Shown here piece after piece: positions 10,484 through 12,938 of a DNA stretch of 64,000 bases (its first letter is position 1; each line of letters starts with the position of its first letter). Position numbers and translations under genes: made by a program. This DNA comes from Salpingoeca rosetta (taxonomy: Eukaryota; Protista; Choanoflagellata). The notes beneath the pieces were generated by a model, which ran no database searches, was not told the origin of the DNA, and saw only the letters and a list, made by a program, of their open reading frames with translations. The DNA lies in contig JAWQFM010000020.1 of assembly GCA_033442325.1 (NCBI GenBank), forward strand, positions 975,388 through 1,039,387, written 5' to 3'.

Positions 10484-12938
10484 ATGATGACGGCAAGCCA
10501 GCCCAGCCGGGCCAGCAGCCGCAAAGCTGCAGCAGCCGCGCAAGCCAACGACAACGCAAACAGCAACGGTCACGTGGCTGCGTCACGCCGTCAGCAGCGA
10601 CAGCAGCAGCGACAGCAGCAGCGACAGCAGCAGCAAAAACCAAAAGCAGGAGAAGTTGGGGTTGGTGGCGATAGCAGCAGCAATAGCAAGGCGCTGGCTG
10701 CCACGAACGGCATCCCTCGCCGCCGCAGCGGTCGGGTGCGGAAGCCAGTGATACGTGAAGGCGATGCCGACGAGGACGAGGCGCATGCGCAGTCCAAAAC
10801 GAGGGCGCAGGCTAGTGCATCGTCTGCAACGGCTTCGCCTCGTACCAGCAGGGCCCGCAACGGCAACGGTAACGGTAAGGGCCTGCACACACCTACTTCT
10901 GCGCCAGGGCCAGCACGTAACCGGCGCCGATCCCAACGCATCAAGCAGCAGGAGCCAGTTGAACCGCACAGCGCGCCGCACAAGCGACGCAGCAGCAGCA
11001 GCAGCACGAGTGGCAATGGCAGCAGCAATGGCAGCAAGGCCGCAACAGCAGCCAAGATGCCAAAAACGAAGCAAGTGAAGCAGCAAGCGAAGCAGCAAGC
11101 GAAGCAAGTACAGAGGCAGGGGAAGACAGCAGCAAGGAACGACAAAAATGCGAAGAGGTCGAAAGCAGGGTCTGCGAGAGAGGTGGCGCAGCAGCACCCC
11201 AAGAAGAAGCAACCCCAGCGTCGACGGAACCAGTTAAAGAAACCCAAGCTGAAGAAGGAGCCAAGGCACAAGAGGAACGGCAAGGGAGATGATGATGATG
11301 ATGATGATGATGACGAGGAGGATGACGGGGAGGAGGAACGCAAGCTCAATGGAATCAACACGGCAGAGCTGCAACGGACGACGAAGACACCAACGGAGAA
11401 ACCAGGCGCTTTGCAGTGCCTCATCAACGAGGTATGTGGTTGTGTTCGATGTGTGTGATGTGTGTGTATGTGTGTGATGCGTGTGATGTATGTGTATGTG
11501 TGTGTGTGGTTGTCGCTGTTTTGTTGACCGCGCCTTTGGAGGATACCTTGCACTTTTGCGTCGTTGCTCACACCTGCTTACGCACGTGTGTGTGTATGTG
11601 TGTCGCTGATACCTACTGACACATGTGTGTGTGTGTGTGCTTGATTTTGTTCAGGCGAATGCGCTGGAGGAAGAGGAAGAAGCGCAGCCGTCGTATGAAC
11701 GAGAGACGGAAACCTTTTGCTCGGCTGTGCGTGAGCTTCATGCAAACGGTAACTTCAGTTGTCAACTTGAGTCCACGCGTGCATCATGCGTGCTGCAAAC
11801 TCTCCGATGCGGCGCAGCGATCTGTCTTGCGTCAATGGAGCTCAGCTGTGTAGCCATTCACCAACCCATTATGACCAACTAACTCGCTCACGCCATTGCA
11901 TCTCACACCACCACCAACACCAACACCACCACAATCCATCCATGCACCATCCGCTGCCTGCAGGCATGCTGCAAACGGGGGACGTGTGCGAGTTCAAGGG
12001 CGTTGTCGCTGAGCTGGATGGTGATGGCGATCTTGTTCTTGCGGACGGCCAGGTCTTCCCAACCCCCGGGATGATGGCTTGCATCATGCAATGGAGTAAG
12101 CCGGCACGTCCACCCGCCGTGCTGTGTGGTGTGGTGCCTGCTGGCAGCTGCAGTTGCGTTTTGCTTTGTGATTTGTGGCGTGACCAGCATCCACTATCAG
12201 CACTTACGCATACCCATGTGTGTGTGTGTGTTTGATTGTTTCTGTGCCATCAGGTGGCTTCAGCAGCAATGGTTGGAGCTGTGTCAAGTTCTACTCCTCA
12301 TCACCGCAATTGATGGATGATGGACCCACATCTTCCACCAAAAGAGGAAAGCGAGCTCGCAAATCGTCTGCAGCGGCCAAGCCAGCCTACTCCATGCTCA
12401 CCATCGCACAGCTGCGCAAACAGCTTCTCAAGAAGGTGTGAATTCTTGTGTGCATGCATGTGTGCTTACGTGCTCATGTTTGTGTGCGTGTGTTTGTGTG
12501 TTCGTGTGTGTGTGTGTTCGTGTGTGGTTGTGCGTGCTTGATTGCATGTGTATGGTCATGTTTGTGTGCACGCAATTCCGTGAGTGTTGTGCATGAGCGT
12601 GTCGTGTATCCTGTCTTCTTGCATCAACGTCCCGTCTCTTAGCGCACCATCTCGGTGCATTGCGTCAATGCGCGCTCTGCTGCTCCCCACCCCCTTGTAA
12701 CCCCCCGCTATCCCCCCATACCCCGACATCGCACGTGTTTCACTCTCTGGTGACAGGAGCAAGAGCGCCGGCAGCTAAAGAGGGAGGAGGAAGCAGCCAG
12801 TGGCCAGACAGCAGCGGCACCACTACCTGGCACGACACCCACCACCGCGGCTGCAGTTAAGACGGAAGCAAACGCAACAGCAGCCGACAAAGGAGAGAAT
12901 GGCGCATCATGTCATGACACGATGAACATAGGAAAAGA

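Follow-up and report, generated by a model that had tools for sequence, protein, structure and literature searches.

To find their targets, KMT2A and KMT2B depend on modules that bind DNA and chromatin. The CXXC domain, which reads unmethylated CpG, does part of this work in vertebrates. What stands at this place in the corresponding enzyme of a choanoflagellate? The question is raised by a stretch of 64,000 nucleotides from Salpingoeca rosetta (assembly GCA_033442325.1, contig JAWQFM010000020.1, forward-strand positions 975,388 to 1,039,387), which we call the window and to which all plain coordinates refer. It has 55% G+C and short TG-rich GT-AG introns, and its contig (C20) belongs to a 55.4-Mb assembly of 68 contigs. 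The plus strand of the window carries a KMT2-type gene. Our analysis indicates, with a probability of roughly 0.7, that the N-terminal part of this Trithorax/MLL1-2-type H3K4 methyltransferase contains a domain of the RAMA family.

Three conserved exons encode the RAMA-like domain

The domain is divided over the following exons.

11655-11748, plus strand: exon A, an acidic stretch followed by the N-terminal helix region, alignable from about 11715
11964-12095, plus strand: exon B, the RAMA-like core with G-x-L-x-x-GD ... A-E-L-D-x-DG-x-L-V-L-x-DG-x-x-FP
12254-12435, plus strand: exon C, with a strand region (12256-12294), an insert (12295-12396) and the C-terminal helix (12397-12435)

Each of the three exons is followed by a GT donor (11749, 12096 and 12436) and preceded by a CAG acceptor (ending at 11654, 11963 and 12253), and their splicing gives 408 nt in frame with no stop codon. 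An initial annotation of the window had proposed this splice, and we found its borders canonical and the translation identical to the peptide it gave. Its start at 11716 is only approximate, since 11655 is the first position of exon A and the domain can be aligned from about 11715; exon A aligns to the RAMA template columns from about 23-30. The insert in exon C is a basic, low-complexity loop of 34 amino acids.

We searched 1.84 billion representative proteins with exon B and obtained two exon-level homologues, 67% and 58% identical by phmmer. The remaining output was repeat noise, without a match to the protein of S. rosetta itself. The first homologue lies on a TARA marine metagenome scaffold (L001), in which exons A and B are present before the contig ends. 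The second lies on a Logan contig from run SRR14727191 (L002, 36% G+C), in which all three exons are present. Both contigs are eukaryotic, and their intron positions and phases are those of the window; in every genome found the RAMA-like domain is divided over three exons. When aligned, exon B is 65% identical to L001 and 55% to L002, with 21 of the 43 columns invariant. The orthologues of exon A (L001:3255-3351 and L002:2158-2248) keep its phase. In the orthologue of exon C (L002:2852-3060) the motifs GFSSNGW.CV.FY and TI..LR.QLL.K are invariant and the segment between them differs in length and sequence. The G, DG, NGW and LR hallmarks are invariant among the orthologues. Beyond the two homologues, a profile search of 5.8 billion proteins gave a single near-identical copy from TARA, so the module is rare in the sampled sequence.

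Compared with L001, the closer relative, exon B shows a dN/dS of 0.22 (14 codons with synonymous differences only and 15 amino-acid differences). The antisense frame is much less conserved than the coding frame (37% versus 65%), and exon B occurs once in the genome. Because of the orthologous exons, the shared phases, the dN/dS, the weak antisense conservation and the single copy, we regard the exons as more than a chance arrangement. An indirect trace of splicing may also be present in sequencing runs. Eight runs from two studies contained 0.33 of the sampled words of 11600-12500, close to the 0.37 calculated for contigs made of exons only, while runs with the whole stretch reach 0.9-1.0. We take this as a hint of RNA and nothing stronger.

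The spliced domain resembles RAMA over its whole length

Pfam scans were run exon by exon, and the spliced domain was compared locally by hhalign and by hidden Markov models (HMMs). The reference set consisted of 34 bacterial domains identified by the Pfam RAMA model at E-values of 1e-14 to 1e-23. The profile of the three orthologous sequences matched this set in hhalign with a probability of 93%, P = 3.5e-7 and a score of 43.3. As controls, 300 column shuffles gave a mean of 11.8 (standard deviation 2.4, maximum 20.3) and the reversed query gave 12.5. When the variable loop was removed, the probability was 94.4% with P = 9e-8, against a maximum score of 22.7 in 200 shuffles. This alignment spans template columns 30-111 of 115 and includes NGW and the I..LR helix. 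The same loop-free profile matched three restriction-type RAMA domains with a probability of 92.5% and P = 5e-7 over columns 23-117 of 117, a comparison made without a shuffle control, and the register was identical with that of the 34-domain set. The full-length similarity (score 43-44) is beyond both the shuffles and the natural decoys.

The hallmark motifs follow one another in the order known for RAMA: a G-x-L-x-x-G helix-turn, an A-x-[VL]-x-x-DG strand, NGW and a C-terminal [IL]-x-x-LR helix. As single sequences, the window domain scored 33.0 against the 34 domains and the L001 fragment 22.0, while 130 natural decoy windows reached at most 17.0. In the HMM-versus-sequence comparison the spliced domain scored 12.1 bits, and the best of 4000 shuffles 8.7. 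To calibrate such values, we scored known domains with a related profile of 12 bacterial RAMA sequences. CcrM was matched at 1e-38, the RAMA domain of MPND (7YDT) at only 15.4 bits. This means that the window domain is about as distant from the bacterial RAMA domains as a bona fide eukaryotic one.

Several results weigh against this assignment. L002 alone scored 16.2 against the 34 domains, which is inside the decoy range. The HMM score is marginal on a background of natural open reading frames (E = 0.04, rank 1 of 1036), and a second HMM placed the domain at rank 3. Exon-wise Pfam scans of the L001 and L002 orthologues gave no RAMA match, and six-frame searches of the genome with Pfam RAMA and with our bacterial RAMA profile missed the window exons. 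The neighbours of exon C and of L002 exon B in the ESM Atlas belong to other families, SAP (0.76) and Pol_BBD, respectively.

Could the domain then be a lineage-specific module of another or unknown fold, which is RAMA-like only through short motifs (G.L..G, DG, NGW, L..LR)? The only match to a curated model points in this direction: PF18755 on exon B alone gave 12 bits, E = 0.21, over profile positions 40-70 of 107, against a gathering score of 35.2 bits, and RAMA was one of three weak matches of this exon. The orthologue pieces without Pfam matches, the position of L002 among the decoys, HMM E-values of 0.04-0.5 on the natural background and the Atlas leads to other families all speak for it as well. 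Yet two RAMA sub-profiles align the whole domain in one register at P of about 1e-7, and none of the 500 shuffles or the 130 natural decoys came near the real score. The proven RAMA domain of MPND does no better against bacterial RAMA profiles, and the four hallmark motifs are all in the correct order and spacing. An unrelated fold is therefore unlikely, while being the most serious of the alternatives that we considered. As judged from these alignments, the spliced domain is very probably homologous to the RAMA family, and the resemblance to RAMA that had been noted in the initial annotation now has a controlled profile-profile match over the whole domain behind it.

Searches with parts of the domain were less informative. 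Exon B alone gave a weak hhalign match (P = 0.006); RAMA clusters are among its neighbours in the ESM Atlas, with scores of 0.80 and 0.77, and we treat this as a lead only. Exons A and C gave no Pfam RAMA match when scanned singly, and when profiles of exon B or exon C were run against PDB sequences, neither MPND nor CcrM was matched. The last helix (12397-12435), which follows the basic stretch, resembles half a SAP motif; the RAMA alignment pairs the same helix with the terminal I..LR. A homologue search with the RAMA alignment returned only CcrM fragments and added no diversity to the reference. Among the viral contigs searched we found no confirmed RAMA relatives.

The Pfam RAMA model had no matches in the six-frame search of the S. 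rosetta genome. The bacterial profile gave a weak match on another contig (G000:C26:602267-602350, equal to L157:4268-4351; E = 0.015) with the motif NGWTRWH, beside a run of N. It may represent one exon of another RAMA gene, for example an MPND-like one; around it we recognised no other RAMA exon and no JAB domain. A match of the same profile on contig C4 was rejected as an SH3-like false match.

The domain lies in an open exon chain with PHD fingers, upstream of SET

The other parts of the gene are the following.

10484-11431, plus strand: putative first coding exon, 316 amino acids, basic and of low complexity, with an acidic run and an end motif; donor GTATGT at 11432
12757-13046, plus strand: linker exon D with a long Asp/Gly acidic run; CAG acceptor and GTAAGT donor
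13338-13428, plus strand: exon E, family unrecognised, 30 amino acids between the RAMA-like domain and PHD1; its phases fit those of its neighbours
13591-15371, plus strand: PHD1-PHD2-PHD3 triad in six exons, with two composite Cys4-His-Cys3 matches spanning the three fingers
18475-19048, plus strand: ePHD (zf-HC5HC2H) in exons 18475-18638 and 18927-19048
19614-21346, plus strand: terminal coding block with FYRN (19664-19831), FYRC (20159-20359), SET (20768-21085), post-SET and stop codon (21344-21346)

We assembled the gene model manually, guided by splice sites, reading phase and sequence conservation. It replaces an over-split dynamic-programming model at 12436-15371; between 15372 and 18474 it is rough. 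From the ATG to PHD3 we obtained an open chain of 2442 nt (814 codons) with 11 GT..CAG introns of 158-321 nt. Its exons are 10484-11431, A, B, C, 12757-13046, 13338-13428, 13591-13799, 14097-14239, 14442-14533, 14733-14842, 15026-15073 and 15269-15371. In this model the RAMA-like domain occupies amino acids from about 336 to 452.

The frame of the first exon is open from 10391, its first ATG, the presumed start codon, is at 10484, and it enters exon A in phase 0. The end motif of this exon is kept as PGALDRLLKK in L001 (3116-3214) and as PDALEKLKTE in L002 (about 1860-1890). Otherwise this basic N-terminal exon evolves fast, and its last ten residues (11402-11431) are all that is conserved of it across the three taxa. 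Exon D continues the frame of exon C in phase 0 and joins exon E in phase 2. The counterpart of exon E in L002 (about 3798-3900) lies 3' of the RAMA exons on the same strand and shares FW..(V/I)..R(I/L)..R.G......T..LAH(L/M)E.

Within the PHD triad, the exon at 14098-14238 matches solved PHD fingers, best that of DPF3 (5e-5) and more weakly those of KAT6A, KMT2D and MLL. The spacing of PHD1-3 is collinear with what we take to be that of PHD1-3 in human MLL1. The first ePHD exon matches PF13771 with E = 3.4e-7 and 30.8 bits (cut-off 29.1) over profile positions 1-55 of 91, and the next exon continues over positions 58-90. In the terminal block, Pfam recognises SET (5.4e-26), FYRN (3.8e-15) and FYRC (3.7e-10). 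Candidate acceptors for this block are 19516, 19614 and 19652. A short TG-rich in-frame intron precedes the post-SET, whose Cys motif is visible at the C-terminus in the rough gene model.

When the SET domain was compared with PDB sequences by phmmer, it scored 160.8 bits with KMT2A, 158.5 with KMT2B, 152 with KMT2C and 149.1 with KMT2D SET alone. SET1 (119) and EZH (72) were lower, and a longer KMT2D fusion construct was the highest at 190.9. By its SET and post-SET, FYRN, FYRC, ePHD and PHD triad, the predicted protein is a Trithorax/MLL-type KMT2 H3K4 methyltransferase. The pattern of PHD3, as we know it from MLL1, and the small difference in SET scores suggest the A/B subfamily rather than C/D.

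The KMT2 context proposed earlier for the RAMA-like exons was confirmed in so far as these exons share a strand and an unbroken, spliceable frame with PHD1-3, which are followed by ePHD, FYRN, FYRC and SET. From the open, phase-consistent chain and the exon order in L002 we infer that the RAMA-like domain and the PHD and SET domains are on one transcript. On the same comparisons, at least three taxa conserve the RAMA module of this KMT2-type enzyme with an unchanged intron structure.

The donor of exon C invites another explanation. In both genomes a TGA occupies intron positions +4 to +6, in GTGTGA (12436-12441) in the window and GTATGA (L002:3061-3066) in L002. Exons 1 and A-C could thus be a separate gene or isoform of about 453 amino acids that ends at the TGA past 12435, with KMT2 starting downstream. 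If the donor is read through, the product ends in ..LLKK-V-stop (GTG TGA), in L002 likewise at GTA TGA with an open reading frame ending in ..LLEKV; GTGTGA is not a strong donor consensus, and there is an in-frame Met inside exon D. Against this, the 321-nt gap is TG-rich like all other introns here, and its CAG acceptor continues the frame, which stays open across ten more exons into PHD3. Exon order and strand are also retained in the distant relative L002. Moreover, 321 nt is short for a 3' untranslated region, an intergenic spacer, a promoter and a 5' untranslated region combined. A separate short gene is therefore improbable. It is conceivable that the exon C donor sometimes stays unspliced and yields a truncated product of the basic region and the RAMA-like domain, and this would count against the assignment to the full-length enzyme.

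A divergently oriented neighbouring gene upstream (about 8380-9530, minus strand) is 64-84% identical at the protein level to L001 at about 470-1560, so local synteny is kept and L001 stems from a fairly close relative. A TG-repeat stretch at 16301-16374 is intronic in the rough model, and the window has a 100-N gap at 5731-5830.

Comparison with known RAMA and KMT2 proteins

The nearest parallel in a eukaryote is MPND (7YDT, 7YDW; PF18755), a chromatin protein with an N-terminal RAMA domain and an acidic stretch on each side of it. GQVF..P before a helix and GW..VK[YF] in a strand can be recognised by eye in MPND and in the window domain, and both score low against bacterial RAMA profiles (15.4 and 12.1 bits, respectively). 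They differ in the partner, which is a JAB/MPN deubiquitinase in MPND and PHD-SET in the window. Compared with MPND, the segment of the window domain before the A.L..DG strand is much shorter, 34 basic residues are inserted before the last helix, and NGW stands where MPND has CGW.

The C-terminal RAMA domain of CcrM (6PBD) belongs to the family with the strongest profile-profile match and shares the register of G.L.PG, A.V..DG, NGW and I..LR. CcrM is bacterial, its domain is fused to an N6-adenine methyltransferase and only about 25% identical, and its GSIH..GA stands where the window has FP.PG..AC.

Fusions of this general kind have been listed before. Iyer, Zhang and Aravind (2016) describe, in the part of their paper considered here, rarer eukaryotic architectures in which RAMA is combined with SET, PHD, Bromo and further domains of chromatin proteins (PMC4738411). 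The window architecture is of that kind. The lineages named in that part as bearing RAMA are animals, chlorophytes, stramenopiles, rhodophytes and giant viruses, with choanoflagellates not among them, and its text assigns the SET fusion to no particular organism or subfamily of KMT2 (PMC4738411). Beyond this general listing, we found no literature that links RAMA with KMT2 or with choanoflagellates. What is added here is a KMT2A/B-type enzyme with a RAMA module, the RAMA-SET and RAMA-PHD fusions having been listed in general terms in 2016.

With KMT2A, KMT2B and Drosophila Trithorax the window protein has in common the PHD1-3 triad, the ePHD, the split FYRN/FYRC and the SET/post-SET. Its SET scores are slightly higher with KMT2A/B than with isolated KMT2C/D SET domains and clearly higher than with SET1. 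It differs from those proteins in that Pfam detected no bromodomain between PHD3 and the ePHD, and its FYRN and FYRC are only about 110 amino acids apart. To our knowledge, a RAMA-like domain has not been described in animal KMT2 proteins.

The domain stands at the position of the vertebrate CXXC

No CXXC Cys pattern was present in any plus-strand frame of 8000-23000. In the genome-wide six-frame Pfam search, zf-CXXC gave only two sub-threshold matches, both on other contigs. The absence of CXXC noted at the outset was thus borne out for the gene, and no CXXC above the cut-off was seen in the genome. It had also been said that the RAMA-like domain sits where animals have CXXC and could be a swapped module. 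In the predicted domain order, the position does match that of CXXC in vertebrate KMT2A/B. A swap is not demonstrated, since Drosophila Trithorax is not known to carry CXXC either. For the same reason, the missing CXXC does not bar the enzyme from the KMT2A/B clade.

The CXXC of vertebrate KMT2A/B and the window domain are alike as modules of DNA-binding type N-terminal to PHD1, if the latter binds DNA as its relatives do. Their folds are unrelated. CXXC reads unmethylated CpG by base-specific contacts, whereas solved RAMA domains contact the backbone and make no base contacts.

The domain as a possible DNA or nucleosome anchor

The order of the protein is basic region, acidic run, RAMA-like domain, second acidic run, short conserved exon, PHD1-3, ePHD, FYRN/FYRC and SET/post-SET. 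By analogy with CcrM and MPND, the RAMA-like domain would contact the sugar-phosphate backbone of duplex DNA and bind with little dependence on sequence. The acidic stretches that flank RAMA on either side in MPND damp DNA binding and promote histone binding (PMC9963953). The acidic flanks found here may similarly modulate DNA binding and contact histones. The module would help to hold the methyltransferase on nucleosomal DNA beside the PHD fingers, which read histone tails. Judging by these relatives, its most likely role is that of a DNA or nucleosome anchoring module for the methyltransferase; its fold, its DNA binding and any effect on H3K4 methylation are inferred.

Is the domain a reader of N6-methyladenine?

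The initial annotation went further and proposed that the RAMA-like domain reads N6-methyladenine (6mA) or another DNA mark, steers H3K4 methylation and functionally replaces CXXC. The biochemical role of RAMA domains, either a 6mA sensor or a plain DNA and nucleosome binder, is disputed. According to the part of PMC4738411 considered here, the fusions of RAMA in restriction-modification systems led to the prediction that it discriminates 6mA. In a pull-down, the MPND RAMA was selective for 6mA-DNA in a Mettl4-type sequence context, and the MYSM1 RAMA was not selective (PMC6591016). Only one eukaryotic RAMA domain, that of MPND, has been studied structurally; it was found to bind double-stranded DNA and nucleosomes independently of sequence, and 6mA left the binding unchanged (PMC9963953). 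In the MPND and CcrM structures RAMA contacts only the backbone (PMC9963953). H3K4me3 colocalises with 6mA in many unicellular eukaryotes, and readers have yet to be found (PMC12695648).

A six-frame Pfam search of the S. rosetta genome for MT-A70 found three loci only; among solved structures they are closest to METTL3, METTL14 and plant METTL4.

G000:C8:1665775-1667251: MT-A70 locus
G000:C9:765532-765991: MT-A70 locus
G000:C15:305158-306360: MT-A70 locus

The DPPW catalytic motif is kept in the METTL3-like and the METTL4-like locus. None of the MT-A70 loci looked like a 6mA writer of the AMT1/MTA1 type in this exon-by-exon search, which a divergent gene could escape. Two loci of the C5 DNA methyltransferase family were above the Pfam cut-off (G000:C20:1278479-1280268 and G000:C13:996467-998637); the one on C20 lies about 240 kb downstream of the window on the same contig.

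The prediction from restriction-modification fusions, the selectivity of MPND in the pull-down, the METTL4-like gene together with the lack of a CXXC above the cut-off, and the colocalisation of 6mA with H3K4me3 would all fit a 6mA reader. It is made doubtful by the MT-A70 repertoire, in which only METTL3-, METTL14- and METTL4-like loci were seen, by the backbone-only contacts in MPND and CcrM with MPND binding unaltered by 6mA, and by the lack of selectivity of MYSM1. With no AMT1-type locus and no effect of 6mA in the MPND structural study, the proposed link from 6mA to H3K4 methylation is not supported, and we consider such a reader improbable. Its more specific form, a choanoflagellate Trithorax/MLL-type enzyme targeted through a RAMA domain able to discriminate a DNA modification such as METTL4-type 6mA or a different mark on adenine, is a speculation with slightly poorer prospects still. 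If it were true, the domain would couple a DNA mark directly to H3K4 methylation, as an independently evolved functional counterpart to the CXXC/CpG logic in vertebrate MLL1/2. It would also be the first 6mA reader candidate joined to a histone writer.

Implications for KMT2 targeting

The meaning of the RAMA-bearing KMT2 enzyme is tempered by the general listing of RAMA-SET and RAMA-PHD fusions in 2016 and by the lack of an evident 6mA link here. The set of eukaryotic RAMA proteins is very small, and the enzyme is a conserved and selectable addition to it. Because S. rosetta is open to gene editing, the hypothesis can be tested in this organism. At the same position of the protein, a unicellular organism closely related to animals appears to employ another DNA-binding module, one of bacterial origin. 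If so, the targeting part of a KMT2A/B-type enzyme would be evolutionarily interchangeable.

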